Shown piece by piece: positions 6,843-62,728 of a stretch of DNA of 64,000 bases. Within the stretch, counting starts at the first letter, position 1; every line of letters starts with the position of its first letter. Where the stretch lies: assembly GCA_964247055.1 (NCBI GenBank), contig OZ176051.1, positions 6,076,001-6,140,000 on the forward strand, written 5' to 3'. The position numbers and the translations under genes are program-made. Under the pieces are notes generated by a model, which worked only from the letters and a program-made list of their open reading frames with translations, searched no databases and was not told the DNA's origin. The stretch is from Paragordius varius (lineage: Eukaryota; Animalia; Nematomorpha).

Positions 6843-6937
6843 CTAAAAATAATATTAATGTTGTAAGATATGAAAAAATATTCATAAATAACATTTTACA
6901 AAAAATATATCAAAAGTGTTCTGAACATATAAATTAC

Positions 6938-7544: not shown

Positions 7545-7829
7545 CTAAATGATAAAAATTAAGTATATTTCAAACAACCAAATAAATAAAAAGGCCATTT
7601 TAATTAGGGGCCCGTACAAAAATTTGGATAAATTAGTAAAGATCCCTCAAACCACCTAGAAGGTCTGTTATTTGGCCCAACTAATTTATAATAAACAATT
7701 TTCTATTTTTTGAGTACAAAAAATCAATGTCCGTTTTATTGAAAGTGAATGCCTAAATATGACTAATAACAATACTTTTTAGTGTTGTTTTGATTATTTA
7801 CTAAAATATTGTTTTTAGCGATAACCGAA

Positions 7830-27514: not shown

Positions 27515-27621
27515 ATGGTAAAACTATTTATAATATTTTATTTAATTCCATATGTCGGAGCTGGTAAAGTTTGTATGACTGAAGCTGATAGGGCTGCAAT
27601 GCAAGCCATATTCCCTCTCAA
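27515..27621 (+). CDS. Secreted protein copy A, exon 1 (signal peptide)
   Basis: MVKLFIIFYLIPYVGA-GKVCMTEADRAAMQAIFPL, with donor AA|GTAATA (phase 2). Same length and donor as the paralog at 59234-59340. Confidence 0.8.
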
Positions 27622-28234
27622 GTAATATTGTGTCAAATTAGGTTGAAATTTTAGGACAGTATGAGTAAATATAAATGGCTATTTTTCAATTGAATATTGA
27701 CAAAGAGTAAACAAGTTAGAATTTTTTACATTTTCTGCTTTTAGCCGTTATTATTTCTTTATATTGTCTTGTCACTCAGAGTAATTATTTTTGGTTTGGG
27801 AATTATCCTTTTAAACCCAAAAAATTTGGGTTTACTTTGCTACTCTAATAATTGGCAATAATTTGTTCTTAGGGATTAGTATTCATTAAGTTCTACTAAC
27901 AAGGTTGGGAAATACCGTTAAAGCAAATTTTTATGTAATATTTTAAAAAACATGTGCTTTTTTGTGAACCAGCTACTTAACAAAAAGTTGCTCAAAGCTT
28001 TTTCGCATACATCTACATAGATAGATATATTAGACACGAATAAGCAAACCATTGAAAAATTTAATTTTGATTAGTATTTATCAATTTAACCGTAATATCT
28101 TTAATGCTTTTGAATTATGTAACATAACAAAGGTGCTTAATCTTGTTTGCCATACTGCTATAATGGCAACTTAAGTAATCAAATTCAAGCTTTTAGATCC
28201 TGAATTTACAATTATGTTAAATTCTATCAATTAG

Positions 28235-28379
28235 CCACGTTCAAATGCTAAATTCAACCGATAACTCTTATAAATGGTCCTTTGATTTGGTGGCATATCG
28301 ATCAGAAAATATTGCAATTTACGGCATAAACGAGACCCTAAAATCTTTATTCAATTATATATATGATCAGTATCCTGGC
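28235..28379 (+). CDS. Secreted protein copy A, exon 2
   Basis: TTAG| acceptor, phase 2 to 0, GGC|GTAAGT donor. 48 codons, collinear with the paralog at 59753-59897. Confidence 0.82.
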
Positions 28380-29479
28380 GTAAGTTTCTTAAATTATTAT
28401 TATAGTTGTTTAAATATCATATCATATTAAATGTCTTTAATATTTATTAATTACAGATTCAATACTATTTTTTGCCAATATTTGATAAATTATTTTCACC
28501 GTCTGAAATTATATCATATATAGTCTTAATGTATAATTATCGCATTTTAAAATAGAGGCTAATTTTATAAATTTAACATCATTTCATTTCCATAAGGCTC
28601 TGAAGACTGTCATCCGAAGCTGCTTATTTTCATTTTAAATATAACAAAAATTAAAAAAAAGCTTCTAAGAGAGAATCATGAAAAATTAGAAAATTAAATT
28701 ATTATTATAGACATGCGACAACCATGTGACGATGGGCCATTTTTAAAATTATTTTTTTGCGGGCGGACATTTATATGTTACATTTGAAATACACTATACA
28801 TTGTATACCCACATTTACTAACCATTCCCAAAATTTATTTTAAAATAAACCCTTCGTATATGCGTGCACATTAATTATGATTCGATACAACGTATATCAA
28901 TGTTAATTTTTGTCAAACTTTAATAATAATTTTTTAAGAATTAGGTTTTCTGAATCGATTCCATTATACAAAGCACACAAAATAATATACTAATAAATTA
29001 TATTTGTACATATATAATTTCATTATGTTTTATTTGTAGCTTACGAGTGATTTATGAAAGTTAATTGTGGTGAATGATTATGACCAGACGTCCCGCTTTT
29101 GGCGGGACAGTCGGGCTTTTTTACACTTTGTCCCGCGTCCCGCTACCTTTTTAAAATTTCCCGCTTTTTCACGATATAAAAAAATATTTTAATACAAATA
29201 AATTTTTTTTATTCGTTATTTTTTAACATTAAATATTAATATCTATATAATTTTTAATTTAAAATTTTTTATTTTTAAATTAATATTTATTTTTTTCGAA
29301 TTTATATCATATGATTATACACTTTCCTTCCTACTACTGTCATCATCATAAAAAAGCCAAGTTAATACCACAAATCTCTAGATTAAAAGACAAATTGATA
29401 TCACAAATCAGTACCTTACACGTTTATTCCAGAAAATTAATGTAATATGATATTTATTTTACTAATAGTAGTGTAAAAA

Positions 29480-31290
29480 TATGAGACAAAAAAAGTAATT
29501 TCAACGATGAATAAATGATAGATTTTCCTTTTATCAAAATAACGAAGAATGAATCATCTGTTAAATGTCTTATATGCAAGGGGAAATCACCCTAGCACAT
29601 GGCGGCAAGCATGATATAAAGCTTATGGAAACACAGAAACATAAAAAATGTTTAGATATGGCGGCATCATCTTACAAAATGAGCGATTTTTTTCGAAAAA
29701 CCGCTTTTGGAGAGAAAGAAAAGAATTTGGCACTAGCTGATGGCGTGTTATCTTTTCACGCCGTTAACAATCATTCCTTTAGATCTATGGACTGTACCTC
29801 ACAGGTTATTCGCACGTTTTTGCATAAAAAATTTACATGTGCCCATACAAAGGCTGAAGCCATTGTGTGCAATGTCCTTTCGCCACATGCATTTTCTGAA
29901 ATTCAAAAAGATTTGCTGAAAATTAATTTCTTGTCCCTATACTCTGATGCATCAAATTACCATTAAACAAAATTATTTCCCACTTTAATAAGATATTTTG
30001 ATTCTGAAACCGGAGTAAAAATTAAAATTTTAGATTTAATTTTTCTACCCGATGAAAATTCCGAAATAATATTTTCTTCAATAATGCATATTCTAGAAAA
30101 AAATAATTTTAAAGACAAAATTATCGCATACTGACAACACCCATACGAACTTTGGTGGATAAGCAAGGAGGGGAACAAAAAATATTTTTCATAAATTAAA
30201 AGATAATCTTAATCAAAACATTATTGGCGTTGGGTGTGCAGCGCACATAATACACAACGTTATTCATGATTTGTTAACCCTAGATGTGGAAAATGTAGTT
30301 GTTAAAATATATTCCTATTTTTATATATACACGGTGCGTGTTGAAACGCTTAAACTGTGAAAATGCAGAAGTTCAATATCAAAAAATGCTTGGATATTGT
30401 AAAACTCGTTGGTTAGCTTTTATGCCAGCTATCGAAAGAATTTTAAAATTGTATAATCCTTTAAAATATTTTTTTTTTATCACAGAACAAATGTCCTGCA
30501 ACTTTAAAAAAGTTTTTTGAAAGTGATTCTTCAAAAATATGGTTAGAATTTTTACATAATCAAGCTTCTCTCTTTCAAAATGTTATTAAATTGATAAAAG
30601 GTGACAGAATTTCGGCAATCGAAGTAGCCAATTAAATTAGTAACGTAAATTCCAATGTCAAGAACGGTTAGAAAATAATTATAACATACCATTCGCAATA
30701 CAATAAATAATTTAGAAAAACAAGGCTTGTTAAATCGCCAAGATATCGTGTACCATATAAAAATGTTTTATACAAACTGTAAAGATTATTTGGAAGATTG
30801 GACGACGCAATTAATGAAAGTGATCATTTTCATTGGATAACATTAAAATCAAAATTTAATTAATGGGATGTTCAAAAAATCATTTGATTATCTCTGCTCC
30901 CAAAAATTCTTAAAAAGTAATCCATTAGTTAAAATATATATTAATGAAAAAGTTAAATTATGGACAAAAGAAAATTATACAGTAGAAAAGAAATGGTTGG
31001 AAATATTTCGTCATTTTGAAGTCAACTATATTACATACAATAATATATTTAAAATTGTGGAATTTGCACTATCTTTACCTGGAACCAACGCTGCTACTGA
31101 GCGCGTTTTTGCCACAGTAAATCAGCTAGGGACATCGAAAAAATCAAATTTAAATGTTAAAACTTTAAAGGCCGTTTTATTTGTCAAAAATTTGACTAAT
31201 TCTTGTGAAGACTTCTACAATAATTTAAAAAATGATGACAATCTGCTAAAACGCATTCACTCAAACAAAAAATATACCAAAAAATATTTA
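29480..31290 (+). pseudogene. Disrupted hAT transposase
   Basis: Fragments carry the motifs VKCLICK, YSDASN, LGYCKTRWL and LSLPGTNAATERVF (dimerisation domain). Multiple frameshifts and stops. Confidence 0.85.
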
Positions 31291-31310
31291 CTTATATTTA
31301 TAAAGTCTTT

Positions 31311-33815
31311 GACCCATGTTCGGGTAAGTATTACTTGCATCCTTATGCTTAAATCCTTATGCTTAATTCCTTATGCTTACGTCCTTATGCTTAAATCCTT
31401 ATACTTACGTCCTTATGCTTAAATCCTTATGCTTACATCCTTATGCTTACATTTTTGAATAAAAATCATAAGTCTGCTCCTAGTAGACTTATTAAAATTT
31501 CAAAGTGGCATAACTTTAAAAATATTGTGAATTTTTTAATTCTGTAAATTGGAGGGAGGAAAGTAAAGTATATTTAACAAATAATTTATAGGTTTGGGTA
31601 ATGTTGCTTCAATCTTTTGGCATTAAAAGGAGTTTACACAACCCCTGTTAAAAAATAGAAAATTCCTAAAATATGCATACAAAATCAAAAGTTTTTTAGA
31701 AGAAATAGGGCATTTTATCCAACTATATTTTTTAGATTTATTTGAGTCATGGAAAACGAAATATTTGCATACTTTGTGAAATAAAAAAATCAATCCAGTT
31801 TTTCAAATTCTTTAAATTGGAGGATAAAAATAATGTATATATAATAAATTTTCATAGGTTTTAGAAATTGAAAGATCACATACACATCTTAGTGAACTAA
31901 GCTTCTTGAAAAAATATATCTGGAACATACATGTAACACCCAAAGTTTTTTACAAGATGTGCAATTGATTTAACCATATTTTTTAGATTTCGATGTCATG
32001 GCGATCGAATCGCACTTTTTGCAATTTGAGGATGAAGCTTTGAAGAATCTACTTATTTTATTGGATTTTCATAAAATTTTTACTATTTGATATATAAAAT
32101 TATATATTTATGTTTATTATTAATAAATATATGATATTTTGAATTTACTTTAGTTGCAAGCGTCTAAAAATCATTTTATCCACAGTGCACAAAACCGGAG
32201 GCTATAAAAAATATTATGATCAATAAAATATAAAGTATATTAGGAGTATCATGGTGCTTGGTTTTAGGTCTAACGAATAATATTGAGGTATATCCAATTT
32301 TGTGGTAATTGTTCCTTATCGAAAGGTTGCAAATTAGGCAAACTTTTTTGGAGTCTACGCTTAAAATTCTAAACTTCATTTTGGTTTTCAAATATTATAA
32401 TTAAATGATATTATTAAAGGAAATTAAACTTTGACCAAAAAAGACCCCTAAATATATCCCCAAATTTAAAGCAAAAGCTAATCAAAATTTTGAGTCGATA
32501 GAAATGTTAAACATCAAGAAATTATATATAAAAAGTGTTTTGATATCTTAAAGCACCATAAAATACGAATGGCAAAATAATTAAAAAATCTATTATATTG
32601 TCAAATTCTAATTTATATAAGAAATATTATCGCGCATCGGCTTTTTGAAAAAACTGGCCCATTTTAAAGAAGTCCAAAAAGTTGTATTATAGCCTACGAA
32701 ATTTAAATATTTTTGTTTTCGAATATAGTTCATATCATAATATAATGGTATTTTTAAAGGGAAGCATTTAGCTTTCACCAAAAAAATTTATAAATTTATT
32801 TAATTTGCAACCTTTCGATAAGGAACAATTACCACAAAATTGGATATAACTCTAAATTATTCGTTAGACCTAAAACCACGCACCATGATACTCCTAATAT
32901 ACTTTATATTTTATTGTTCATAATATTTTTTATAGCCTCCGGTTTTGTGCACTGTGGATAAAATGATTTTTAGACGCTTGCAACTAAAGTAAATTCAAAA
33001 TATCATATATTTATTAATAATAAACAAAAATATATAATTTTATATAACAAATAGTAAAAATTTTATGAAAATCCATTAAAATAAGTAGATTCTTCAAAGC
33101 TTCCTCAAAATGCAAAAAGTGCGATTCGATCGCCATGACATCGAAATCTAAAAAACATGGTTAAATCAATTGCACATCTTGTAAAAATTGGGTGTTACAT
33201 GTATGTTCCAGATATTTTTTCAAGAAGCTTAGTTCACTAAGATGTGTATGTGATCTTTCAATTTCTAAAACCTATGAAAATTTGTTAATACATCATTTTT
33301 ATCCTCCAATTTAAAGAATTTGAAAAACTGGATAGATTTTTTTATATCACAAAGTATGCAAATATTTCGTTTTCCATGACTCAAATAAATCTAAAAAATA
33401 TAGTTGGATAAAATGCATACCTATTTCTTCTAAAAATTTTTTGATTTTGTATGCATATTTTAGGAATTTTCTATTTTTTACCAGGGGTTGTGTAAACCCC
33501 TTTTAATGCCAAAAGATTGAAGCAACATTACCCAAACCTATAAATTATTTGTTAAATATACTTTACTTTCCCTCCTCCAATTTACAGAATTAAAAAATTC
33601 ACAATATTTTTAAAGTTATGCCACTTTGAAATTTTAATAAGTCTACTAGGAGCAGACTTATGATGAATGTATTATTTTTGTTCAAAAATACAAGCATAAG
33701 GACGTAAGTATAAGGATTTAACCATAAGGACGTAAGCATAAGGAATTAAGCATAAGGATTTAAGCATAAGGAGTTAAGCATAAGGACGCAAGTAATACTT
33801 ACCCGAACATGGGTC
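31311..33815. repeat. Long inverted repeat / foldback: arms 31311-32336 and 32801-33815, spacer 464 bp
   Basis: The arms are near-exact reverse complements (about 95% or more by eye). The outer ends carry a 14-bp tandem repeat CCTTATGCTTA(A/C)NT, with 8 units on the left (31341-31452) and 7 on the right. Confidence 0.92.
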
Positions 33816-33849
33816 TTTATGTTAAAAAATAAACAAAATTACTTAAAAT

Positions 33850-34560
33850 ATTGTGTAAGTCTTCATAGCTTGTCAAATTATATTTGAACACATAAAATAA
33901 CTTTTATTCAACATTTAAATTTGTTTCCGTGTCCTTACTTAATTTACTGTGGAAAAAGGCGTTCAATAGCAGTGGTTCAGGTAAAGATAATTCAAATTCT
34001 ACAATTAAAATATTATTGTATGGAACATAATTTGTTTAAAAATGATTATTTTAACCATTTCTATCCTACGTATTTTTTCTGTTGTCCGTAATATAAGTTT
34101 TTATTCAATAGATTTATTTAATAATGAAACTTCATAAAAAAGTGTCATTGTGCATCGTCTTGTCTTCCAAATAATCGTTTCTGTTTGTATAAAACATTTT
34201 TATATTATGGCTATTCATTGAGCCTTGTTTTTCTGGATGCTTTATAATATTGCGATTAGGAAATGGTATAAATTTATTTTCTAACCTTTTTTGACTTGAA
34301 ATTTTGACCTTTGTCCTGTGATAAAAAATAGGATTCTAGGAGATCACATTTTTAATTTCAATCGCTGGCAAAAGAAGTAACCAACAGTTCGACAATATCC
34401 AAGCATTTTAACATCTAAATATTCCCCATGGGGTAACAAATCAGTAGCTGTTTGAATAGCGTTGTGTATCTGCCAATAATGTTTTGATTATGATTATTCG
34501 CTAAGTTTAAAATATTTTTTGTGCCACTTCTTGCATCATCGAGCGCACTTTGTGATGATT
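33850..34560 (-). pseudogene. Second, more decayed hAT transposase C-terminal fragment in inverted orientation
   Basis: The reverse complement aligns to 30200-31220 (e.g. AAAATGCTTGGATATTGT and CTATCTTTACCTG/TTATCTTTACCTG anchors). Roughly 70% identity with deletions. Confidence 0.8.
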
Positions 34561-35035
34561 TCGTCTTTATTATTTTACAATCACTTCCCCCTTTGTTCGT
34601 GCACATGTAAATTTATTAAATAAGGTACAAACAACCTGTAAGGTACAAATTTTTTTATATTTATAATGTATTTGTGTTAAAAATAAATATATTACAATAA
34701 ATTTTTTGTATAAAAATTTTTGGTTGTAGACCCCAATACCCCCCCCCCCCCCCTGTCCCGTTTTTTCTTTAAAAAATCTGGTCACCTTATGAATGATCGA
34801 TCTAATAAAATTGGTAGTGCACATTATACCAATTAAATTTTTTTTATCGAAATCTATATACTTCACCAAAAAATATCATCATATATAATTATATTTCATA
34901 GAGAAAAAAAACAATATTTATATAAAAAATAGAAGTAGGCCATGAATTTTGCAAATTTTTGGACCCTTTTAAAATGTGTTTATTTTCTTAAATAACAATA
35001 CGCCCGAAATCGGGGGGTATAAAATAATATATATA

Positions 35036-36600
35036 TATTATTACATTACATGTTTTCACTAGGAGCGGTCATGTTATACAACCTGTCTCGCCATAGAACT
35101 CTATCTATGGCGTTTCTGCACTAAGCTCTTCTGCTAGCTCTCTTTTTACACTATCTATCCATTTCGTTTAGGGCCACCCAGGTCCTCGTTTTCCCTCTAT
35201 ATGAATATCTATCATTTTTGCGAAACAGAATCTGTCCTTTCAATGTGCCCGAACGTAGCCTATTTTTCGACATTCTTTCCACTATTGGTTTAACATCTGT
35301 GCTCCCACGAATAAATCTATTCCCAATTTTGTCCTCTCCTGTTACCCCACACATCATTCTAAGCATTTTCATTACAGTCACGTTAAAATGTCGTTCTTCG
35401 GATTTTTTGACACCTCACGTCTCTGAATTATTCATCATTGTGGGTTGAACAACTGAATTGTATATCTTAACTTTCACTCTAACATCAATATTTCGATCAT
35501 ACAACACGGTTGACATTTTCTTACAATTTACCCAACTGCTCTTTATTCTTAGATTAATATCATCGTTCAACAATCCGCCTGAACTTAACATAGCCCCAAA
35601 ATATTTGTAACTTTCTTTACCCTTCAGAACCCAACTATCATCAACTTCCATTTCATGTTATGGACCCCCGAAAGTGATAAGTTCGGTTTTTGTTTTGTTT
35701 ACTTTTAACCGTATTGTTGCAGTATAATAACCCATCTGTTCACCGTTAGCTTTAACTCAGCCAATGAATTAGACAAGATGATTATGTCATTTGCATACAT
35801 TAAGTTCCAACCTAACCTTACGTTAAAGACCTTAGCTATCTCGTCCATCCAAATTATAAACAATAGGGGCTGAGTGATGAGCCCTGGTAGACTCCATGCT
35901 TTATTAAAAAGTGCTCTGATAAACCTTGTGAAGTTTTAATCCTTGAGGTGTGGGATTCGTACATTATTTATAATAACCTAATATAACTTTCTGGCACCTT
36001 TTTACGACGGAGACTCCACCAAATAATATCTCTAAGAATCCTGTCAATTGCCTTCCTCATGTCAATTAAAACCCCGTTTTATTCTTTCTTATTTGCAATG
36101 TATTTTTCAATCAACCTCCTAACCGCATGTATAGGGTCTATTGTTGGCTTTCCTGGCATGAAACCAAGTTGATTTCCTTCTATAGATATCATTTTCCTGA
36201 TTCGTTTTTCCATTATTTTTTCAAACAATTCATAATATGGGACATTAGTTTTATCCCTCTATAGTTACCATTCATTTATATCACCTTCTCCTTTAAACAA
36301 AGGCAAAGTTAAACTTTCCTTCCATTCAACTGGTATTTCATAAGTTGAAACAATTTAATTAAAAACACGCTCCATGAAATTTAATCTAGCGTTTCCAATC
36401 ACTTTCCAACAATGTATTCTCGTCCGATCCAACAGCCTTGTTGTTTGGCCTTTTTTAACAAATTGGATTCTACCTTTTTTCTGTAATTGCTTGTATTGGT
36501 CTATCAGTAGCTTCAACTGTGTTTGGCAAAAATTTGTCTACCCCTTCATCCAAACTCACGAAATACTCTTTCCATCTTTTTAATATTTCGACATTTTCGC
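35036..36600 (-). mobile_element. 5'-truncated RTE-clade LINE (decayed reverse transcriptase)
   Basis: Motifs QLGFMPGKPTID, GVYQGSSLSP, LMYAND, YKYFG and KMLRMMCGVT. 3' tail ATGTAATGTAAT. Confidence 0.9.
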
Positions 36601-36636
36601 ACAAGTTTCCACATATATAATATTCTAATAGGAAAA

Positions 36637-37776
36637 CACTAGTCGACAAATTTAGACATTTTTGAGCACCACCACTCGAACTTTTTAAATTATGACTAAT
36701 TTCAGTGTTTTAAAACCGAATTTGAAAAATATTTTGATCCCGCCAATCAGAATTTTGAAATTTTATAGGTTTTTCAATCTTTCAAAAACAAGAGAAAATC
36801 GAGAGAAAATTAAATATAGCTTTATAATAAAATGTTATTATATTATAAACTTAATATCATTTAATAAAGCGTTTTAAACTCTTTCTTTTGAATATAAATA
36901 TGTCATTTAAATATCAGAGAGAAAAAAATAGTACGGACTTAAACGTCAAAATTTAGTCTTTTTCTTTCAGGTGAATTTTTAATACGTATAAAAAATTTTT
37001 AAAAAAATACTAAAAAAGGCATTCTATGGTTTTAACCTTCGGCTTTCAAATAGGCTATAATATTTTGTTAGTTTCCGTTCTTTTGAGTACTTATTAGACT
37101 TCTTCTCTCGAGTTGGTTCTTATAAAAAATCCTTTATTTATACCTAGTGGATATACCTTATTTTTTAAAAATTATTGGTTGTTTTGTATTTTGAATTTCA
37201 GATGGATGTTGTGTAGCCACTTTTAGTAGAATTTACTGTTATGGGATTGGACCATTTGTATTTACCTAATTAATATTCAATTTAATTGTAGAATTTATCT
37301 AACTCTATTCTGTAAATTGGTTAATTTGACATTTCAATTTGCCTGGATTTTGCTTGCAAGTCTCTCTTATCGAATTTTACGATTACTTATTGTTATCCTT
37401 GCCACATCTGGCATAATTATAGGATCGCTTGGGGGATATGCAGAGCTTGTGCAGCCGCCCGGATCTATCACACTATACATAAGCCCCTTTTAGATTTTTA
37501 TACTTTGGCTCTTAGCTTGTTTAGTATCTTATTTAATGCCTAGAATTTTGTTATTCATGCATGGAATATTACTTGTATCGACTTGTTCGTTTGAATATTC
37601 AAACATATGTACCGAGGAATGATTGTTATTTTTAAATTAAATACAAATATAAAAATTAAATTTCGGAAAAATCCTATTGGTGGCCTCAATATTCTTTTTT
37701 GTTTTGACCTTACCATGCCATTAGGTATCAGAAAATGCAAAAATAATGGAGTGGTGCAAAACCTTGTTGAGCAGTG
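36637..37776. mobile_element. Non-autonomous CMC/Chapaev3-like DNA element, copy 2
   Basis: Same termini, flanks AAA/AAA. Carries two short segments near 37416-37467 that copy 1 lacks. Confidence 0.75.
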
Positions 37777-37794
37777 AAATGTATCAAAATTATT

Positions 37795-38958
37795 GTGCTT
37801 TTGGTTTTGGCCCTTATGATAATTTAAGAAAGTTATTACACTCTTGTTTTTAGTTCTCCAAATCAAAAAACACAATTTACGCAACTTTTTTCAGTAAAAT
37901 CGTAAAAACCCGTATCGCACAATAATAACATTTTAGGCAAAAATGTTGATATCAATTAAAATTAATTTTAAAAATGCCATACCCTTTTCAAAATTTAATT
38001 TTTATTAAATATTGTAGCATACGTCATACTATTTTGAGTCATGATGGAAAGCGCTTTAAAAACATCTTTTCCATATAATTTGATGAAGCTAAACACTTTT
38101 ATGGCCTCATGATTATTCATTCGTCGTCAAATATAAAATTTTGAAGCGATAAAATGTTTAGCATCCTCGAATTATTTGGCAAAACTTTTAAAATGTTCTA
38201 AAGCGGTTTTATATCCTTTGCATCATTCTTAAACAGTATGAAGTACGTTTTAAACAAAATTTGTTAAAAAATAAATTTTAAATAAATGCATTATAGAAAT
38301 TTTATTTGATATTAAAATTTAGCCTATATTTAACCCTTTTGTCGCGCAATATCAACATTTTTGTTTTTGTTAAAAAAAATCCACTTTGCAGCCAAATTTA
38401 AAATTATAATTTTTTAAATTTTTGTACTTTATGTAGTTAGTGATATTTTTGAAAAAATTGAAAAAATGTGCGCAAATTTTCCCATTTTTTAGATGGACCT
38501 TACTATAAAAGTGTAAATTACTTTCTTTAATTTCTCGTAACGATCACAACACACTATGATAATCCTGATCCATTTTTTTATCAGAATATATATTTCATCA
38601 GGTTATTTTTTGTGAAACAAATAGTAGATAAAAGGCTACTTTTATTTAAAATTTTAAATTTGGCGCTTGAAGCGTTTTTCCTGGTTTGAACCATGGTGTA
38701 ATCTGTTATTCTATATAATTCAATGATGCTGAACATTTCTATCACTTTAAAATTTGGTTAAAAGGTTAGTTATTATAAAATCTGTTTTTTACAAATTATG
38801 ATTTAATATTATAATTTTTGAAATGAAGCATTAAACTTTTATCAAAAAACAATTTATTTGATTTACTGTGGGCTAACCTTGAGCCTTTTCGAAATAAAGC
38901 AATCATAGAAGCGATAAATAACTATTTTTCAGATCACTAGGCCCAAAACCAAAAGCCC
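37795..38958. mobile_element. MITE-like relative of 1436-1993 and of the element Y core
   Basis: GTGCTTTTGGTTTTGG and GCCCAAAACCAAAAGCCC inverted ends. 38215-38620 resembles 26115-26560. Confidence 0.45.
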
Positions 38959-40149
38959 GATGCTAATACTGATACATTTTTCCATTAAAATATATAAAAT
39001 CACAGGACATTTATTATAGCACCCGATTTTGTGTGCCGTGTTATTGTATTTTGCTTTTAGTGTGTATTGGTGACTCAAATTCAACAAATACATTCAAAGG
39101 TTCTTTGTAAATTAATAATATAACTACTTTTGATAATTCCTAGTTTATAATTTGCCTAGATAAAAAATATATCCGACTGTTACCGAATATATACAGTCCC
39201 ATACGCTTTTCAGATTAATGGATTCTAAGCTTTTGTAAAAAACGTTAATAGTAGCTAGAACGATTTTAAAAAAGTATAAATAGGTAATAAATTTTGCGAC
39301 CATTTTACAAAATAGTTTAGAAGCCTGAATTTAAGGTGCAATGTAGAAAATGAAGATTAATTACAAATCCGTGATGTTTTTTATGGGCAAACCTATTTTT
39401 TTAAACTCTCATTTTCAGACTGAGGAACTTAACTCAGGGGCTAATACAAAATTATATATTTTTATTAATATAAACCATTTGCACTTCAGGACTGTCCATG
39501 GTTGGACATTAAACATTTCATGATGTCCTTAAACACCGTATTATTTTTATTATTCAAACTTTTGAATCAATCAAAATCTTCTCTTTTTTAAGCCGTATAA
39601 TTTTATTTATTTTTTCAAAATATTTTATTGTTAATATTTTACGCGTAATTAAATAAGTCTGGGGTTGCCATTTTTCATAATAATTGTAATATATTAATAA
39701 TTTTGTAAAATTATAAAAAATTTGGTTCAAAGTATAAATGTTTTTAAAAATGAAAAATTTTGTATAATAAAATATTGATAAATATATTAGGGTTAAAAAA
39801 TAAAAATAATAGATGAATATATACATATGTTACTGTTAGCATTCTCAAAAAATTTATGGATCAATTTGAAGTGTTTACGGACTCTCTCCAAATAGGACCA
39901 AAATATTTGAAATCAATGATGATGAGTTATAGCCCGAAAGTACATAAATATTTTTGGGGTGAATTTGAATTGTTCGAGGGTTTAATGTTTAAATATTAAT
40001 CTTTTTGGTAATTGAAACACTAAATTTCTACAAAGGTACAGATTATGCACCTATTATATAACTTTCAATCAAATATTCTTATAAGACCAAAATTTATTTT
40101 TTTATTCATTCTACTATTTTAAATCTAAAGAAATATATTTTTTGAAAAG

Positions 40150-40335
40150 GTTTCATTCTATATCGACATCGTAACAACGTGTAAATCCAGTTGGTTGTTG
40201 TGCCAAAATCGATTCGATAATAATAATTACGATAACACCTTCTTATTAATGAATGTTAGAAATTTTACAGATTATAACTGTACGAATACCGAAATGCATC
40301 TGCACGAGCGTTATAGTTCAAATCGGCCAGATTTT
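40150..40335 (+). CDS. Secreted protein copy A, exon 3
   Basis: AAG| acceptor, 62 codons, TTT|GTAAGA donor. Against the paralog at 62543-62728 there are 5 synonymous and 5 nonsynonymous differences and no indels, while the flanks are much more diverged. Confidence 0.82.
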
Positions 40336-40574
40336 GTAAGACTTTATTTATTCCATGAACATGTTAATAAAATTTGAGAAAATTTTTTCTTTACTAACAT
40401 ATATATTTATATATAATAAAGGGTGAGTTTGTTTTAAACAGTTTTTACCATTATTCTGTAAAAGTATTTAGCTTAATTCTTAAAATTGGATACTGGAACA
40501 TAAAATTTGTAATAATATACAGTTTAGTTCTTTTTTTATTTAAGGGTAAGGATTTAAATTATATCCGGACTTTT

Positions 40575-40684
40575 GAAAGCTTTAACACTCGCTTGCCCGG
40601 TTGACAGTGATGATGAATGTGCGTAGTTTCGGAATTCGAACTGGCATGTAGTGTAGGAGTCAGCACCCTACCTACTATACCCGC
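40575..40684 (-). mobile_element. Possible tRNA-derived SINE fragment
   Basis: The minus strand has a B-box-like GTTCGAATTCC and an upstream degenerate A box. It is GC-richer than its flanks and absent from copy B. Confidence 0.35.
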
Positions 40685-41452
40685 TTCTTTTAAAAGATTG
40701 TAATCATGGTCACGATACCAATGCAAAGCGTGATACATCTAGTAGCTCTCACGGTTAAGAAGTTAATCACTAAAAATTAAAGAATCAAATAAAATATAAA
40801 TAAATTTAGTGAAAAAGCATGGTTAATTCATTTTGTTTAGTTTTTTTAAAGAATATATTTTTTGATATTATTAATGATCATTTATAGTTAGGAATGGCTG
40901 CAAACATAATAAGAGGTCACATGGCTTATGCTTTTTTGACCGGTTAATCCATCCATATTTGTATCACATTTTTTTAAGTAAATGGGAAAATCTTTTTAAA
41001 AGTCTCTAGGTTTATCCAGGATGCAACTCATTACATAAAACCTTAAATGATTTTCAAAAATACTGGCATATGCCCACAATATACTGATTTAGTTAGGTTA
41101 AAATTTTGACACAGCACTAGTATTATTAGGCCTTAAATTGTTTTATCTTAAAAGATTTTTCGTTAAAAAGATTTGGCGTGGAAATTCTGAGATTGTTAAT
41201 GATATAGCGATGCTGAAGCACGTTTTGAAAGACCTATATGTAAGACGTATCATTAAAAACATCAAAAAATATTTTCATCAAAGTGAAAATATCGAAATTC
41301 AACCATATTGATAAAACTTATATCGTTTTTGTTGGTGTTTTTGATTGTTTTTAATAAACTCGTGCACACAGGGAAGAATCATATACCTATTTTATTTTTT
41401 CTGTTCACCAAATATAATTGTGATATAATATGGAAAATATGAGGATATATAA

Positions 41453-42921
41453 TCTACATATTTATAAATATGGAAAATGCTGACTTTGTGATCTGGTTAG
41501 ACCCATTCAAATCCAAATATCGAAAAAGTATAATCATTAATCAATGCCCCGACATTAGCCTTGCCCTTTTAGGCCTGTTCGGGCTCACCCCATGTAAAAA
41601 ACGCGCTTTTTTGAAAACAGAAGTCCACAAAATTCGTGTCTTTGAGACAATTTTCCGGAGAACGTGTTGGACCATTCAATTTCAAATATGATTTTTATTT
41701 AGTTATTTTCGATTGCGCCGAACATAGTCGTCTCGCTTTTTTGATTAGGCCCTCTTTTTACCCGCTCCCCCCGTAAATGGCCACCTTTTTCAAAAAATAA
41801 AGTCCACAAAAATATTTTTTTGAATTGATTTTTTGCCCAAGGTATGAGACCGTAAAAATTCAATATGAATTCCACGTATTCCCTGTTAAAAGGCAAAATT
41901 TTAGTCAGGCGTTTCTTTGAGTATAGCTGCTGGGTAAGGAGCTACCCGCTAAAAACTGATTCCTCATGTAACTTTGTGATCTGTTTCCGAAAAACCGGTG
42001 AACTTATTCAAATCCAAACATCAAAAAAATATAATCATTAAATGTCCCGACAATAGCTTCGCCCTTTTTTGGAACTAGGCCCCCAGTTTGGGCCTATCCC
42101 GTGTAAAAAAAATGTTGAGACTATATTCCGGAAAACGTGTTGGACCATTCAATTTCAAATATGATTTTTGTTTACTTATATTTGCTCGCGCCGAACATAG
42201 TCGACTCACTTTTTTGATTTAGGCCCTCTCTTTACCCGCTCCTCCTGTAAAATGCCATTTTTAAAAAAAAACAAAGTCCACAAAAATAATTTTTTGATTG
42301 TGTTTTTTTGCCTAAGGTATGAGACCGTAAAAATTCAATAAAAATTCCACGTATTCCCTGTTAAAAGGCAAAAAATTTAGTCAGGCGTTTCTTTGATGAT
42401 AGCTGCTGAGTAAAGAGCTACCCGCGAAAAACTGACCCGTCATATCGGAATAGCGTGCTTTTGGGGCTTAATTTAAGAAAACATATCAGGCCATATGAGT
42501 TATAGCTGCTTAAAGTATTACCCGTAAAGAGTCAAAAATTTTAGTCGAGCGGAATATTATTAACCGTTAAATAGGCCTTACTCCTTAAAAATGCGCTATC
42601 ATTGAACTATTATTTAGTTTCAAAACCATTCTTCCATAAACAATTAGGAATGAACGATTATTCCAGATATAAAGGCAAATTTTTTATCTAACTACATTTT
42701 TATATTGGCCTCTGGGTAGGGGGATACCCGCCTTTAACTGCGCATTCATATCCATACAGCATGTCTTTGGAGCCAAATTTCAGAATATGACACTATGTGA
42801 AATATTTTAAAACTTCGTGCCGCATACCAAAATTGCTTATAAAATTAAAAATGCCCCCTCCCCCCCACCAGAAGTCCGAAGAACTTCCTCAAGCTGCGTA
42901 GCAGCACGAAATTTAAGCTAG
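41453..42921 (+). mobile_element. Non-autonomous Helitron H1
   Basis: 5' A|TCTACATA..., 3' hairpin GCTGC-GTA-GCAGC followed by CTAG|T. Internal tandem duplication of about 490 bp. Confidence 0.8.
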
Positions 42922-43534
42922 TAGTATTATAACTATTTTTAGCATTAATTAATCGGAAGAAATTTTTTTTCACATTTTGAATAAAATGGTCAATTGGTTT
43001 CATCGATTTAAAATAATTGATAGCACACACATGCATATCTGTTAATTTGAAGTTAATATATTTTGGAAGGTAAATAATGGATTTTTTAATCGAAAAAATG
43101 GGGGTTAACGCCATATAAAAGATATAAATGCCAAAAAATTAGCCAAAATGTTCATTTTCGGTAATATCAAAATATGTATCTATATTGATAAAATGACTTA
43201 AATTGTTAGAAATCCAATGTAGCTCCAATAATACACAAATTTTAAAGATGTTTTACGGCTTTGCTAAAATTAAGGGTGGTTTAAACTCATAAATTTTTAC
43301 TTTGTTAAATGCAGCTTCATATATGAAAAGTTTTTGATGTACTTCCCTAGCTCGTGATAATTTAAATACATGGGCAAATTAATAAATGTAAAATTAAAGT
43401 GTATGAAATAAATAACATTTTCATATTTTACATGTACTCTTATATTTTTTTAACTTTTGCGATATTTTTTGTAAGTTATAACCAAAAGTAATTTGTAAAA
43501 TTAAAAAGGGAGGTTGTTATCACATTTATCCGTG

Positions 43535-44120
43535 ACTATTTTAATACTTAAATACAACACACTCATTTTAGTCCTTCGATTCAAATTGGGGTAGTTGGAT
43601 ACCCCAGGGATGTTATAAATCAAATACTTTAAAAAGTATGGAAGGACTCAAAACCATGGCAATATTTTGCACTTATATAACATTAATAAACTGAAATATA
43701 TAAAAAAAATATTCAAATATACTTGATATTACTTATTTTAAGCTAAAACCGAAAGGTAAAAATTTGGTCAGCGTGACATAGGTCAAATTGTAAAATTGAA
43801 AAATTATACAAACTAAACCGCTTTTTCTATTTCTATCGATGTTAGATGTAATTTATATAAACAATTAGCTTTAGATTTACCCTTAAAAATAAATAAAGAC
43901 GATATTTTGCAAAATGTTTGTAAAATAAAAATGGCGTCGAAGTAGTTTGAGATGGAACTTTTTTTTGAAAACAAATTTTTATTAAGGTATTTTGGCATGT
44001 TGATATAATATACATCAGGATAGAAGCATAAATATAAATTGGGACCGTTTCCTTCAGTAGTTTTTTAAAAATATTAATTCAAAATTAGTCTGGGGTATTT
44101 AGATACCCCAATTTGAAGTG
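43535..44120. mobile_element. Second copy of the 7830-8440 MITE family (inverted)
   Basis: Collinear reverse complement over about 570 bp. Confidence 0.72.
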
Positions 44121-44305
44121 TATATATATAGTAAAATTTCAAGCCCATTACTTAATATCATACAAATTATAGCGAAAATACCGATCAGTTGTTTGGTACG
44201 TTTGAATTTTGCATTTATTTTATAGAGCCATCATATTAAAATCCTTAAAAAAACCTATCTAGGCATTTGATATTTACCAATATAGCATGCTTTATTTTTT
44301 AACAG

Positions 44306-44528
44306 TTTAGACTGTATATACAACACAAATTTAATGGATATTATTCACTTGAAATTTGGAAGAATGGTAATGCTTTGTACCAGATTGTAAACGAGATTTA
44401 TTCTAACCGAAAATTGAACATTCTGTATGAATATAGTGAAATATCAGACTTAAGACAACAGTACAACACTTCTATAACGGGTTATATATCGTTTACAAAG
44501 TGCAACACCAAAGCTTCTGAAGACAAGA
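44306..44528 (+). CDS. Secreted protein copy A, exon 4
   Basis: TTTTTTAACAG| acceptor, open phase 0 to 1 (FRLYIQHKFNGYYSLEIWKNG...KCNTKASEDK), A|GTATGT donor. Confidence 0.75.
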
Positions 44529-44919
44529 GTATGTTTACTTATTTGTTAAAACATTTGGTGTGCAATAAACTTTCAAAACAAATATTTTTTTTAAAAAAAC
44601 CTGTTTCGTAGGTATTCTAATATTAGTTGGTAATTATTAAAAATATTTCTTATAATTTCAAAATCTCATCTTCAAAAACCTCAACTTAAAAATAAAATAA
44701 GTCATAATTAACTGCAAATATTTTGGGGGCAGCTTATGATATTTATTACCCCGGTGGCAATTTTATTTAAATACCATTTTAAAATTGAACAATCATTTAT
44801 GCTCATACATTTTCATAATTATAAAAAATTTAATAATTTTTTTATTTTTGTTACTTTTAAAATTGAATTTTAATCAAAGTGCTAATTTATTTATTTTACT
44901 CTTTTTTTTGAAAATGCAG

Positions 44920-45013
44920 GACTGCTGTACTTGGAAGGATTGTGTTCTACATTTTTTGTTGATGGTCAAACGTATAATGTGATATCCATATCACATAGTG
45001 TTAGGCCAAGACG
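44920..45013 (+). CDS. Secreted protein copy A, exon 5 (donor position uncertain)
   Basis: TGCAG| acceptor in phase 1 (LLYLEGLCSTFFVDGQTYNVISISHSVRPR). Two weak phase-2 donors end the exon at 45013 or 45028, and either fits exon 6. Confidence 0.62.
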
Positions 45014-45124
45014 GTTCAGATTATATCAGTATAATGATAAAATTAGTTTATAGTTAATATAATTTACAATTTTGGTTTCCCAAATTTCTTAACATTTTTT
45101 AATTTTACTTAGATTAATATAATA

Positions 45125-47026
45125 TCTATATATTTATATAAATGGAAAGTGGTGGCTTTGTGATCTGTTTCCGAAAAACCGGTTGACCCATCCAAATTCA
45201 AATATCGAAAAATATAATCATTAATGAATTCCCCGACAATAGCTTCGCTCTTTTTTGAATTAGGTCCCCAGTTGAGACCCACCCCGTGTAAAACGGCTTT
45301 TTTGAAAAGTCCACAAAAATCGTGTCTTTGAGTCAATTTCCGGAAAACGTGTTGGACCATTTTATTTCAAATGTGATTATTTTACTTATTTTCGATTGCG
45401 TTGAACGTGGCCGGCTCGCTTTTTTAATTTAGCCCCTCTTTTTACCCGCTCCCCCCGTAAAATGCCATTTTTTCAAAAAAAAGTCCACAAAAATTATTTT
45501 TTGAATCTATTTTTTGCCCAAAGTATGAAACAGTGAATTAATAAGGATTCCAGGTATTTCCTGTTAAAAGGCAAAAATTTTAGTCCGTTTCTGTGATGAT
45601 TGGAGGAGATACCCGCTAAAAACTGACCCATCATATCAAAATAGCGTGCTTTTGGGACTAAATTTATAAAAACCTCTCAAGTCATATGATTTCAATTACT
45701 GCTAAAATATTCCGTAACAAGGCAAAAATGTAGATCGTATAGTTTTTTATAATAAGCCGTAAATTAGGCCCTTCTCACCCTAAAAAATGCGCCACCATAG
45801 AATAATTTTTTAAACTTTGAGACAATCATTCCGAAAACTAATGAGAGCAAATGGAATTAATTATGATTCCAGGTATTCTCCAGGAAAAAAATTTCATCAA
45901 GCGCTTTTTTGTATCAGCTTCGGGTAGGGAGCTACCCGGCTATAACTGCACCACCATATCATAGCGTTGTCAGGATTAATTTTCAGAAATCATTCGATAT
46001 AAGTTTTAGGGCCTGAAATATTACCCGTAAAAAGACAAAAATTTAAGTCGAGCGAATTTTTTATAATACAGGTTAAATAGGCTGGGTAGGGAGCTGTCAC
46101 TATATCGATACAGCTTGCCTTTGGAGCCAAATTTCAGAAAACTTATGAGACTATGTGAGTTTAATAATGGCCCTTAATATTTATTACTCTTTAAAAAAAT
46201 ATTTTAGCATAGGGGGTTATTTCAATGAGCCGCTAAGAAAGGTTTTACGCCCTGAAAAATTTGCCGCCATAGAACAATTTAGTTTTGAAGCAATATTTCC
46301 AAGATCACGAACATATGGACATTATAATTACAGATAATCCCCATATAAAGACAAAAATTTTGCCCGACGCTTTTTTATACCTTGGGTAAGTACCCGACAA
46401 AAACTGTAATATAGAAATTGCGCTGTTTTGAAATTAATTTATATCTTATGCCATATGTGCTTATTTAAAGCGAAATATTACCCTTAGTTATGTATAAATT
46501 AAGGAGTTTTTTTATAAGCCGTTAATTTAGGCCCTTTATACCCTAAAATACGCCATAACAATTATTGAATGTGGAGGTATTTTTTCGAATAACCCAAGAC
46601 ACTATAAGGATGATTCCAAATATTTTCCCTATAAAGGCAAAAAAATCAACTTAGCGCTTTTTCTATATAAACTTATGGGTATAGGTCTACCGGTTTAAAA
46701 CTGCGTCATACAAAAATGGCTTTTTGGAGCTAATTTTCAAAAAGCCTAAGAAGCCCTACGAGTTCAATAAATAAATATTGCCCATAAAAAGGTAAATAGC
46801 GGTTTTTTCCGTCTTCAATTTGGGGCCCATACACCAGTAAACAATATATTAGTATGAATGCACCGGTTTGAAAATCCTATGAGATCATAGCTATTAAATA
46901 ATGTTTCGAAATAATCCACATATATGGATCATTTTATTGTCCTTTTTTTGAAATAGCCCCCGCCCTCCCCCCGCCCCAGAAGTAAGAACTTTCTCGGGCT
47001 GCATAGCAGCATGAGATTTACGCTAG
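45125..47026 (+). mobile_element. Non-autonomous Helitron H2 (same family)
   Basis: 5' A|TCTATATA..., 3' hairpin CTCGGGCTGC-ATA-GCAGCATGAG then CTAG|T. Internal array of about 300-bp subunits. Confidence 0.8.
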
Positions 47027-47373
47027 TATCATATAATTTCTTTGCAATAATCTTTTCACATAAATGAATATATATTTATATATAAATATATATCATAGTT
47101 AGTAGAAGTTTGGCATGTTATGCAATTTTTAAATTTAAAATGCATTTTCTGGTGATTTTCAAATTTAATATTCATTCTCTAGTTCCAAAAAATTGATTAG
47201 AAAATACAAATAAACTTAAAATATCATTTAACTCAAAATTATTGGTAATGTAAAATGAATAAAAGTCTTATCTAGCAACAAATCCATATTATCTTATAAC
47301 TATTATTATTATTTTGTTTTCAAAAAATTGCTTAAAATTTAGTTCAATACATTGCGAATATATTGTATTTTAG

Positions 47374-47539
47374 CAATTTGGAGTTATACCATTACCAAAA
47401 TTATGTTGTGATGTTTGTATCAGCTGACTTTAAGCATGTTATAGAGCCAAATCGAGAAGGATTCGAACTTCTACCAAGACGATTAGATGTTGTCCAGTTT
47501 GTATCCGTTGCCGATGTCTCCATTTTAAACCTCAAAAAG
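47374..47539 (+). CDS. Secreted protein copy A, exon 6
   Basis: TATTTTAG| acceptor, phase 2 to 0, 55 codons (NLELYHYQNY...SILNLKK), AAG|GTTTGA donor. Confidence 0.75.
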
Positions 47540-49265
47540 GTTTGATTTACAGCAAATTTATGGCTATATGTGCACTCTTCAATTTAATAATTAAATTTAG
47601 TATCGTATTTAAGCATGATAAAAAGAGGGGAAGCAAAATATATCGTGGTTAAATGATGGAATGATATCTCTAAATTTGATATTAAAATTAGGTTATAGGA
47701 GCTGATAAGATCATTTATATGTAAATATTATTGTTTGGTCAACAATTTAAACAATATTTTAAAGTGCCATATTAACACATCCTTTTGGGGTTGTCGTATA
47801 CCACAGGTATTAATAAGCATAGACAAAATTTAATTATATGTATTTTGTATTCTACGTGCATCATACTTAAAAAACATTTTTAATAGAATCATAAAGAAAA
47901 TATCAAAGTACAGCCAAAATTTTGGGGTTATGATAAATTGCAAAAAAATAATGGAATCAATATGTAATAATTTAATGAACCTAAATCAAAAATCGATTAC
48001 ATCAGCAAATTTTAGCAATTTGCTTTTATTTATTGGTTTTTCAAAAACCAAAATCCGGGTCATTGACCAAGGTATATCTTGTATCTTAACAATAAATAAT
48101 TCAATTTAGCTCATATATCTGTAAGCAATAATCTTGTATTGTATAATTAATAATAATCACCTTTTTAAAAAAATATAAAGTTCATAGGTTGTTTTTGTAT
48201 GTGATGAATTTACGATGAAAACAATAAATTAATCAATGTTATATCATTTTTAGTACTGCCTGATGCTTTTTTTAAAAACTTCAATCCCTTAAAATATCTA
48301 CTAAGGAAAAAAGTCGCGGTTGGTAAAATGTTAAAATCATTACGCCATTTTTTGCATATTACTTTTAAATAATAATTTATGAAAAATATTTAATATATAA
48401 CATATTCTGGTTGATACATTGCCTTTTATTTTTTGGACGATTACGTTTTGGGGTGGTACACTCCACAGAGCTTAAATTTATTTTTTAAATAATTGTCATA
48501 CAATGTTATACTGTAATGATAATTAACCTCCATGTATTTACAGTTTTTTAACTTCCTTAAAACCCGATTAAAACGAACAGATGATTTTAAAACTATCAGG
48601 TATTCAATGGTTAAATGTTGCCTGTAAGTTTTTTCAATGATTACTTACATATTCTAACCATAAATATTTTTATTTACTTGTTGAAATAATAGCGGCGAAA
48701 AAGTTGAGATAAGGTTTTTTACAATTTTATATTAAGGAATTTTTGAAGCATGCGCCAAAAAACTAAAGAAAGCATATTTTTAAATATGATCTAATACCAT
48801 TCTAAGACAATACCCCAAAAGGTAAGGATGTGGTAATTTGGTATAAATCAATAAACAATCCGATGCTGCCCAGAGTCTAAGAACCTTGATAAAAAAAATT
48901 TAGCCTTGAAACGATATAAGCGTCTGTATGATTATATATACTGATTTTTTCACATTTTAAAAATTGTGTTTTCTGATATAATGCACCTAGAAGTCTAATG
49001 CATTGGAAATTTAATATAATAAAGATTTTAATAGTTATTCAGATTTTAAATACGAAACACAAGTTAATGAATTGTTACTCTTGCTTGAGCACCATTTGAT
49101 AATAAAACCCTACATATTTACTACTGTAGAATGAGTTGCATGAACCCGAAATATTTCTATAAAAATAGTAGTATTTGTAAATTCATGCTTTAAATAAATT
49201 AAATTATTGCTGAATTTAAATAATTTTACTTATTATAAATTATTATTTGTGGTTTTTTATTCAAG

Positions 49266-49364
49266 TTTCTGATCGGCGTACCACCAAGCTTCACTGGAAC
49301 CTGTACTCTAAAACTTTTTGAAATGGACACCCATAATTATATCAACATGACGCTTAGTAATATA
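49266..49364 (+). CDS. Secreted protein copy A, exon 7 (not in ORF track)
   Basis: TTTTTTATTCAAG| acceptor, 33 codons in phase 0 to 0 (FLIGVPPSFTGTCTLKLFEMDTHNYINMTLSNI), |GTAAGT donor. Confidence 0.75.
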
Positions 49365-49858
49365 GTAAGTTTTATTTATATTAGTTAACAGAATTATTTA
49401 ATTTAAAATTGATTTGTGTATAGCCATATAATAGCAATAAAGAATTGATGATGGTTTTTTAGTGAAGATTACATAATTATAAAAAAGTGTTTTGATTACA
49501 GTTTTTATAAGCGAAACAGTTTTGTTCTTGTTCGAATTTTTTATCCCATATTTAAAAAAAAAATTGCCAATCAAATAATTTAGTTTCCAATAATTTTTAA
49601 TTTGGTTCCGATTCCATTAATATATTTTGATTAAATACATCAGGTGTATTTTTTGATGAATTCCTAAACACAAGTGTGAATAAATATAGCCAAAAAGATA
49701 AAAATTAAAACGGTATTTTGTGCCCTACTTTTCTATGTATAATATATATTTTTTAGGTCTGTATATAAAAATAAAAGATTGAAAAAATATTAATTAGGGT
49801 TTTACCAAAACGGTTTCAATTTAAATATATCTGGTGTTGACCTTTATTTTTATTTCAG

Positions 49859-50083
49859 TTTAGCATAAGGCAAAGTATGGATGATGTTTTGATATTTGAA
49901 GGCCATTATCCCAATCCAAGAAATTATTCGATTCCTCACGTATTGCTAGATTCCATTTGGTGTCCAAAACACGATACTCCAAATTTAATCATACAATCAT
50001 TGGAGGGAGCCGATAACTATAATTTTACCATTGTCAGATACATCCGTCATTGCCCAAAACCGAAAATCACTACATCGCAGTAA
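49859..50083 (+). CDS. Secreted protein copy A, terminal exon 8
   Basis: TTTTATTTCAG| acceptor in phase 0, 74 codons to TAA. AATAAA at 50141. Confidence 0.78.
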   Translation, partial: FSIRQSMDDVLIFEGHYPNPRNYSIPHVLLDSIWCPKHDTPNLIIQSLEGADNYNFTIVRYIRHCPKPKITTSQ

Positions 50084-50140: not shown

Positions 50141-50146
50141 AATAAA
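50141..50146 (+). terminator. Candidate polyadenylation signal of copy A
   Basis: First AATAAA 57 nt after the stop codon, just before the duplication junction. Confidence 0.45.
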
Positions 50147-54115: not shown

Positions 54116-54163
54116 AAGTATACATTGCTAGAAAGTTATTAATTATTGGCAAATAGTATATGC

Positions 54164-59233: not shown

Positions 59234-59340
59234 ATGATACAACTATTGATAATATTTTACTTGGCTCCATATATCGGAGCAGGTAAAACCTGTATGACTG
59301 AAGCAGAAATAGTGGCAATGCAAGCCATATTCCCTCTCAA
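59234..59340 (+). CDS. Secreted protein copy B, exon 1 (signal peptide)
   Basis: MIQLLIIFYLAPYIGA-GKTCMTEAEIVAMQAIFPL, with AA|GTAATT donor. 26 of 35 aa are identical to copy A. Confidence 0.8.
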
Positions 59341-59752: not shown

Positions 59753-59897
59753 CCTCATTCAAATATCAAATTCAACCGTTAACTCCTATAAATGGTCCTT
59801 TGATTTGGTGGCACATCGATCAAAAAATATTGCAGTTTACGGCATAAACCATACCCTAAAATCTTTATTCAACTTTATATATGATCAGCATCCTTGT
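59753..59897 (+). CDS. Secreted protein copy B, exon 2
   Basis: AAG| acceptor, 145 nt as in copy A, TGT|GTAAGT donor. 36 of 48 aa are identical. Confidence 0.8.
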
Positions 59898-62542: not shown

Positions 62543-62728
62543 GTTTCATTCTATTTCGACATCATAACTACGTGTAAATCTAGTTGGTTGTTGTGCGAAA
62601 ATCGATTCGATAATAATAATTACGATAACACGTTCTTATCAATGAATGTTAGAAACTTTACAGATTATAACTGTACGAATACCGAAATGCATCTGCACAA
62701 GCGTTATAGTTCAAATCGGCCAGATTTC
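62543..62728 (+). CDS. Secreted protein copy B, exon 3 (gene continues beyond the window)
   Basis: AAG| acceptor and TTC|GTAAGA donor. 57 of 62 aa are identical to copy A. Sequence near 63950 resembles copy A intron 3 near 43130, so exon 4 should lie just past the window end. Confidence 0.8.

Follow-up and report, generated by a model that had tools for sequence, protein, structure and literature searches.

The 64,000-nucleotide (nt) window described here (positions 6,076,001-6,140,000 of contig OZ176051.1, in a Paragordius varius assembly of 110.5 Mb and 44 contigs) contains an eight-exon gene, called gene B, followed by a tandem paralogue, gene C, which begins near the right end of the window and was completed by fetching 20 kb of sequence, since it runs 12 kb beyond the window end. 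These two genes (27.5-50.1 and 59.2-76.1 kb) are probably functional and would encode secreted precursors of ~419 amino acids (aa) that belong to a lineage-restricted or highly diverged family. Positions in both genes are given in window coordinates, to which 6076000 is added to obtain the contig position.

Structure of the tandem pair

The exon model of gene B was rebuilt by listing open frames together with all AG and GT sites and then aligning copies B and C base by base. Eight exons on the plus strand were obtained. Exon 1 (E1; 27515..27621, 107 nt) carries the ATG, encodes the predicted signal peptide and the first residues of the mature chain, closes in phase 2, and has a donor (CAA/gtaat, the slash marking the exon border) that is identical in both copies. 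E2 (28235..28379, 145 nt) contains the sequons NST and NET, is the fastest-evolving exon, and is bordered by an AG acceptor and a GTAAGT donor kept in both copies. E3 (40150..40335, 186 nt) encodes three Cys residues and the sequons NFT and NCT, and its TTT/gtaaga donor (GTAAGA at 40336) is conserved in both copies; an alternative donor at 40362 was rejected because gene C no longer has the GT of 40363 but keeps GTAAGA at 40336. E4 (44306..44528, 223 nt), with sequon NTS, ends in phase 1; its cag/ acceptor and AGA/gtat donor are conserved, while a second AG at 44309-44310 is absent in the paralogue. E6 (47374..47539, 166 nt) is the most constrained exon and has a conserved tttag/ acceptor. E7 (49266..49364, 99 nt) carries sequon NMT between a caag/ acceptor and an ATA/gtaagt donor that are conserved in both copies, and E8 (49859..50083, 225 nt including the TAA stop), which contributes two Cys residues and the sequons NYS and NFT, follows a ttcag/ acceptor conserved in the paralogue. 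A pattern scan places an AATAAA polyadenylation-type signal at 50141..50146 on the plus strand, 58 nt past the gene B stop.

The remaining exon, E5, is the sole conserved open stretch with the required phases (1 in, 2 out) between E4 and E6, and its border is marked by a paralogue stop just upstream of the acceptor. It can be read as 109 nt (44920..45028) or as an alternative of 94 nt ending at 45013, so that the joined frame is open for 419 or 414 aa. The sequence following the donor at 45028 is GTATAA in gene B and GTAATT in gene C, both with A at +3, that at 45013 is GTTCAG, and conservation between the copies extends to 45031. The 45028 donor, and with it the 419-aa product, looks better on these grounds. 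The other candidate considered, an exon at 40914-41001, shows 48% aa identity with the paralogue, contains indels and offers no fitting phase; it was assigned to the intron.

The introns of gene B measure 613, 11770, 3970, 391, 2345, 1726 and 494 nt, interrupt the frame in phases 2,0,0,1,2,0,0, and have AG/GT borders throughout. Exons are richer in GC than introns (34.6% vs 28.1%) in a window whose 2-kb blocks range from 22 to 36% GC, most of them at ~26%. An earlier note on this DNA, prepared from the letters of the window, had described eight exons of 94-225 nt joined in the same phases into one open protein, and the rebuilt model agrees with that description; its estimate of about 414 aa corresponds to the short form of E5 and gives way to 419 aa with the preferred donor.

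Gene C repeats this organization. Its first three exons lie inside the window: E1 (59234..59340, 107 nt) aligns without gaps to its gene B counterpart and keeps the ATG and the donor; E2 (59753..59897, 145 nt) carries the sequons NST and NHT and has gained a tenth Cys at residue 84; and E3 (62543..62728, 186 nt) is the last gene C exon before the window ends. E4 to E8, at window-equivalent positions 65188-65410, 65820-65928, 67536-67701, 75334-75432 and 75875-76102, lie past the window end, also on the plus strand, and each aligns to gene B without gaps. The gene C frame is open for 420 aa, every acceptor is AG and every donor GT, and exon lengths are identical in the two genes except for one extra codon before the TGA of gene C, where the TAA of gene B reads TAT. 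The introns of gene C (412, 2645, 2459, 409, 1607, 7632 and 442 nt) are very unlike those of gene B in size. The first AATAAA lies 78 nt past its own stop. That a tandem paralogue keeps the exon lengths and splice sites, as the earlier note had stated, thus holds for the full-length gene.

The family has two members. At E <= 1 over the whole 110.5 Mb genome, E3, E4, E6 and E8 each have exactly two matches, in genes B and C. A third copy upstream of gene B had been considered because the sequence at 25.1-26.6 kb resembles that at 50.2-54.1 kb; the shared sequence is a hAT-type repeat, also present in intron 6 of gene C, and only two copies of each exon compared with the genome exist.

Selection on the two copies

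The two proteins are 85% identical and the exons 90.2% identical in nucleotide sequence, while intron identity is ~83% over ungapped columns and 74-80% when gaps are counted. The exons contain no indel in 1260 nt, against 52 expected (P about 2e-23) from the 155 gap openings in 3738 nt of aligned intron and flank. Differences between the copies fall at codon positions 1, 2 and 3 in the numbers 43, 24 and 57 (P = 0.001), and the Nei-Gojobori method gives a synonymous divergence (dS) of 0.228, a nonsynonymous divergence (dN) of 0.076 and a dN/dS of 0.33; the proportion of nonsynonymous sites that differ (pN) is lower than that of synonymous sites (pS; Fisher P = 3e-8). All nine Cys, four Trp and 16 Pro residues are conserved between the products. 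Both copies thus have intact frames and splice sites and a dN/dS below 1, as is seen in functional protein-coding genes, and by these measures both are under purifying selection and are kept intact. The earlier note had taken conservation of the paralogue as support for function; the ratio of 0.33, the absence of exon indels and the retention of all borders bear this out.

Constraint is distributed unevenly along the protein. Exons 5-8 have a dN/dS of 0.17 and exons 1-4 one of 0.48. The lowest values belong to E6 (0.07, with a dS of 0.55) and E7 (0.08), and aa identity to the paralogue is 92% for E3, 97% for E7 and 91% for E8. E2 stands at the other extreme with a dN/dS of about 1.0, or 13.5 replacement vs 3.5 silent changes, sites too few for a test of positive selection; with the G84C change in this exon, the Cys count of copy C becomes even.

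These data bear directly on whether the pair could be unexpressed relics, or chance open frames in repeat-rich DNA. Introns full of transposon debris would suit such an origin, as would gene models built on genomic DNA and the lack of any homologue or self-match of E8 among public proteins. At ~26% GC, however, stop triplets are estimated at ~8.6% of all triplets, to be set against two independently maintained frames of 420 codons, and the combination of indel-free exons, 28 of 28 splice dinucleotides retained and a dN/dS of 0.33 is incompatible with neutral decay at a dS of ~0.23. Relics or chance frames are therefore very improbable.

Predicted secretion and properties of the product

The predicted signal peptide comprises the first 17 codons (27515-27565; MVKLFIIFYLIPYVGAG, with K following the cut). 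The N-termini of the two products, MVK-LFIIFYLIPYV-GAG/K in gene B and MIQ-LLIIFYLAPYI-GAG/K in gene C (slash at the predicted cut), share a short n-region, an 11-residue hydrophobic core with a mean Kyte-Doolittle value of 2.4 (B) or 2.3 (C), and a small-residue VGA/GAG motif that places small residues at -3 and -1. By heuristic rules that consider the n-region, an h-region of 7-15 residues, the -3/-1 positions and the lack of a later transmembrane span, both leaders qualify as cleavable signal peptides. No transmembrane span was found outside the leader, the best 19-residue window reaching 1.46 on the Kyte-Doolittle scale, and the product has neither a hydrophobic C-terminal anchor nor a KDEL-type tail. 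The protein is thus predicted to enter the secretory pathway.

An alternative is that the protein is not secreted, the leader acting as a signal anchor or lying downstream of an unseen start exon, which would leave the product membrane-bound or in the lumen of the endoplasmic reticulum or Golgi. The leader is short, and a model drawn from genomic DNA leaves room for extra or untranslated 5' exons; an in-frame ATG at 27437 of gene B would lengthen the hydrophobic N-terminus to ~43 residues. The paralogue, however, lacks that upstream ATG and keeps the one at 27515; in both copies the hydrophobic core of 11 residues is followed by small residues that agree with the -3/-1 rule; and neither a retention tail of the KDEL type nor a second hydrophobic span is present. 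Retention in the membrane or in the lumen is accordingly improbable.

Secretion would leave a mature chain of ~402 aa and 47.4 kDa, rich in aromatic (14%) and beta-branched residues, with an isoelectric point of 7.0 for gene B and 8.0 for gene C. The gene B product contains nine Cys residues and eight sequons (NST, NET, NFT, NCT, NTS, NMT, NYS and NFT), and copy C retains all eight and has two more. The exported protein would be disulfide-bonded and is probably N-glycosylated. A signal peptide with VGA cleavage, no transmembrane segment, nine Cys residues and these eight sequons had all been listed in the earlier note, and the same leader features and counts are recovered in the rebuilt frame; the four sequons that it could compare with the paralogue, one of them changed from NET to NHT, are indeed kept.

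Search for relatives

Homology searches were run exon by exon with the exon peptides. In Pfam, the eight peptides gave nothing at E <= 1 but one chance match. Against PDB sequences, E2, E3, E4, E6 and E8, as well as a two-row profile of E4, gave nothing below E = 0.2. E8 and E4 were submitted to the ESM Atlas, where recognition was low and the results were composition-driven phage hypotheticals or no match. A word search with E3 was blank; its query lay in a 138-aa stop-free frame of the paralogue and covers proteins of 76-241 aa.

E8, the longest of the well-conserved exons, was chosen for an exhaustive phmmer search of 1.84 billion representative proteins (2.4e11 residues). Three proteins matched, all of them repeat-inflated chance matches. 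One is a receptor tyrosine phosphatase of 2606 aa that contains 22 FN3 repeats and another an FG-GAP repeat protein of 1891 aa; the third, 902 aa long, was matched over five separate stretches, and its sole Pfam match is a below-threshold stretch of DUF4176. When E8 was compared with the phosphatase by BLASTP, the similarity came down to one weak alignment of ~30 bits (30% identity over 54 aa), scored once in each of seven near-identical repeats; with 2.4e11 residues in the library, one alignment of this strength falls far short of significance. The search returned no annotated protein containing E8 and no self-match, and the gene therefore seems to be absent from the public protein collection.

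The earlier note had recognized no domain, and no family emerged from Pfam, the PDB sequences, the ESM Atlas or the exhaustive E8 search. A confident match to a well-characterized family, named in that note as a finding that would overturn its reading, was likewise not found in these exon-level searches.

Candidate folds

The pair could instead be very divergent members of a known extracellular beta-sandwich superfamily (FN3 or cytokine-receptor-like, Ig-like, CUB) that escape recognition with exon-sized queries, and would then be ordinary multi-domain secreted proteins of the adhesion or receptor-ectodomain type. The FN3 domain (PF00041) shares the beta-rich composition, and the E8 motif L-x-x-x-L-x-G-x-x-x-Y-x-F-x-[IV]-V resembles the FN3 E-F hairpin; the ~30-bit similarity of E8 to one type of phosphatase FN3 repeat lies over this E-F strand motif. 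All 23 FN3 repeats were cut from the phosphatase, profiles were built and hhalign was applied. E8 gave a probability of 40% against the repeat type it had already matched and 3% when either the full set or the 16 remaining repeats formed the profile, the match to the 23-repeat profile spanning 26 columns only, while E4, E6 and E7 stayed at background (<= 0.4%). The HMMER score of 65 bits for E8 reflects a single weak match summed over seven near-identical repeats, and an FN3 identity for this exon was set aside, the general profile giving 3% and Pfam fn3 nothing. The absence of a Pfam match and of an internal repeat, and conserved Cys residues that are not an FN3 feature, also distinguish the pair from this domain; by these exon-level comparisons, FN3 membership is not supported.

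A second lead came from E4, which has a sub-threshold match to the FN3 ectodomain of IFNAR1 among PDB sequences (E = 0.44). This match disappeared with the two-paralogue profile, and the lead was dropped.

The CUB domain (PF00431) was considered because E7 and E8 resemble, by eye, the pattern C-x-W-I...I-x-L-x-F...D-x-[LV]-x-I-x-DG, and because the E7/E8 split sits near the split point of the two-exon CUB domains of this genome. Half-domain profiles were built from 17 CUB exons of the same genome and compared by hhalign; E7 reached a probability of 0.3% with the first-half profile, and E8 one of 0.1% with the second-half profile. These values are background, Pfam CUB gave no match, and the third CUB Cys, which precedes the D-x-[LV]-x-I-x-DG motif, is missing here; the CUB pattern was rejected.

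A repeated module within the protein was sought by Smith-Waterman alignment with shuffles and by hhalign of E8 against E4, and no significant internal repeat was found; the motif Y-N-x-[ST]-I-x-x-Y-I shared by E4 and E8 and a weak similarity between E5 and E7 are not significant as signs of an internal duplication. AlphaFold2 applied to E8 alone, from a two-row alignment, gave four strands and one short helix at a mean pLDDT (the confidence score of the model) of 55, a quality that does not permit a fold search. The low-confidence strands favour a beta-sandwich, as do the composition and the E8 and E4 similarities. The behaviour of the FN3, IFNAR1 and CUB comparisons described above, the lack of a detectable internal repeat, and the absence of any match at E <= 1 to Pfam fn3, Ig or CUB in any exon stand on the other side, and we regard membership in one of these superfamilies as possible but unlikely.

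Proposed role of the pair

The data presented above have led us to favour a model of two secreted, lineage-restricted or highly diverged paralogues. In this model, the cleavable signal peptide would be removed to give the mature ~402-aa, 47 kDa chain with its nine conserved Cys residues, and the protein would act outside the cell through beta-rich modules in a non-enzymatic binding or structural role. A role of this kind is suggested because the protein appears to be beta-rich and extracellular and carries no catalytic-family signature. The C-terminal half (exons 5-8, dN/dS 0.17) would form a conserved scaffold and the N-terminal half (exons 1-4, dN/dS 0.48, with E2 at ~1.0) would carry the differences between the paralogues, the family itself being either confined to its lineage or diverged past sequence recognition. 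The reproductive, salivary, venom or immune-effector roles put forward in the earlier note, and marked there as inference, are guesses.

Several points weigh against this model. The gene models are drawn entirely from genomic sequence, and the signal peptide call is a heuristic one. Conservation of the Cys residues and sequons is not significant in itself at 85% overall identity. The name glycoprotein, used in the earlier note, stands insofar as the eight sequons are present and kept in the paralogue, but their number does not exceed what composition provides (8 vs 5.0 +/- 2.0 in composition shuffles of this Asn-rich protein, P = 0.11); the name is retained because of the predicted secretion and not because of the sequon count. 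The proposal of non-enzymatic binding derives from composition and from the lack of a catalytic-family match. Finally, searches and folding were carried out at the level of exons, so a distant known fold could be missed; the exhaustive search covers E8, and the word search is blind to full-length proteins when the query is exon-sized.

Comparable cases are the orphan secreted families of arthropods (salivary, seminal-fluid and immune-induced proteins), which likewise combine a signal peptide and, often, tandem duplication with no recognizable domain, no public homologues and a protein of which one part evolves faster. The present pair differs from typical young orphans in being larger and more structured (419 aa, eight exons, nine conserved Cys residues), which suggests an old diverged gene over a de novo one. 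With eight exons, nine fixed Cys residues and a dS of ~0.23 between the copies, it resembles an established gene, either diverged too far to be traced or belonging to a poorly sampled lineage, and not a newborn one. A bolder reading makes genes B and C the sole members of a new, lineage-confined extracellular family, perhaps with a new fold, in which a C-terminal scaffold is joined to a fast-diverging N-terminal half as in proteins of host interaction, reproduction or immune recognition; we consider this rather doubtful. The pair appears to be an ordinary lineage-restricted orphan pair for a predicted secreted protein, and not a new kind of system.

If expressed, the two genes enlarge the gene set of this genome by a pair that is well defined and probably unannotated, and structure prediction gains a clean orphan family; the different rates of the two halves (0.17 vs 0.48) are a testable hint of a conserved scaffold with a variable surface. 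Otherwise they would represent one of many lineage-restricted secreted proteins and open no long-standing question.

Repeats and other features of the window

The GT-AG introns, which reach 11.8 kb, hold hAT-type transposon debris. A palindromic hAT-type insertion occupies 29565-34790 in intron 2 of gene B; its arms (~30685-32400 and 32770-34335) are inverted copies of each other with 85-97% identity at the peptide level, and an open reading frame (ORF) at 30847-31419 encodes a hAT C-terminal dimerisation domain (E = 1e-5). Intron 2 of the paralogue lacks this insertion, and a related piece sits immediately downstream of gene C.

A dispersed repeat of ~1.5-3.9 kb is present at 25153-26643, at 50226-54116 and, within intron 6 of gene C, at window-equivalent 72620-74322. 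In its intergenic copy, three ORFs (51857-53163) match DUF4371 and the hAT dimerisation domain, and because of these matches the repeat is identified as a second hAT-family element, which resembles a duplication boundary but is not one.

Other repeats surround or interrupt gene B. On the minus strand of intron 2, at 35100-36650, a string of short ORFs has the appearance of the decayed C-terminal part of a reverse transcriptase of the non-long-terminal-repeat type; two pieces of it, compared with Pfam, gave no match. A direct repeat of ~1.1 kb, whose copies share 85-95% of their peptide sequence, occurs at 20960-22048 upstream of gene B and at 36689-37890 in intron 2. Introns 3 and 5 (41443-42340 and 45112-45680) contain several copies, in both orientations, of a short element of ~150-250 bp that resembles a miniature inverted-repeat transposable element. 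Inverted repeat copies with 60-95% peptide identity lie at 43383-44120, just upstream of E4, and at 7794-8483. A search of the whole window against Rfam gave no match.

On the minus strand at 3700-6894, the window also contains an open frame of 1064 aa that is rich in Asn and encodes C2H2 zinc fingers around residues 472-493 and 942-988; this is apparently a genuine gene of the transcription-factor type, poor in introns.

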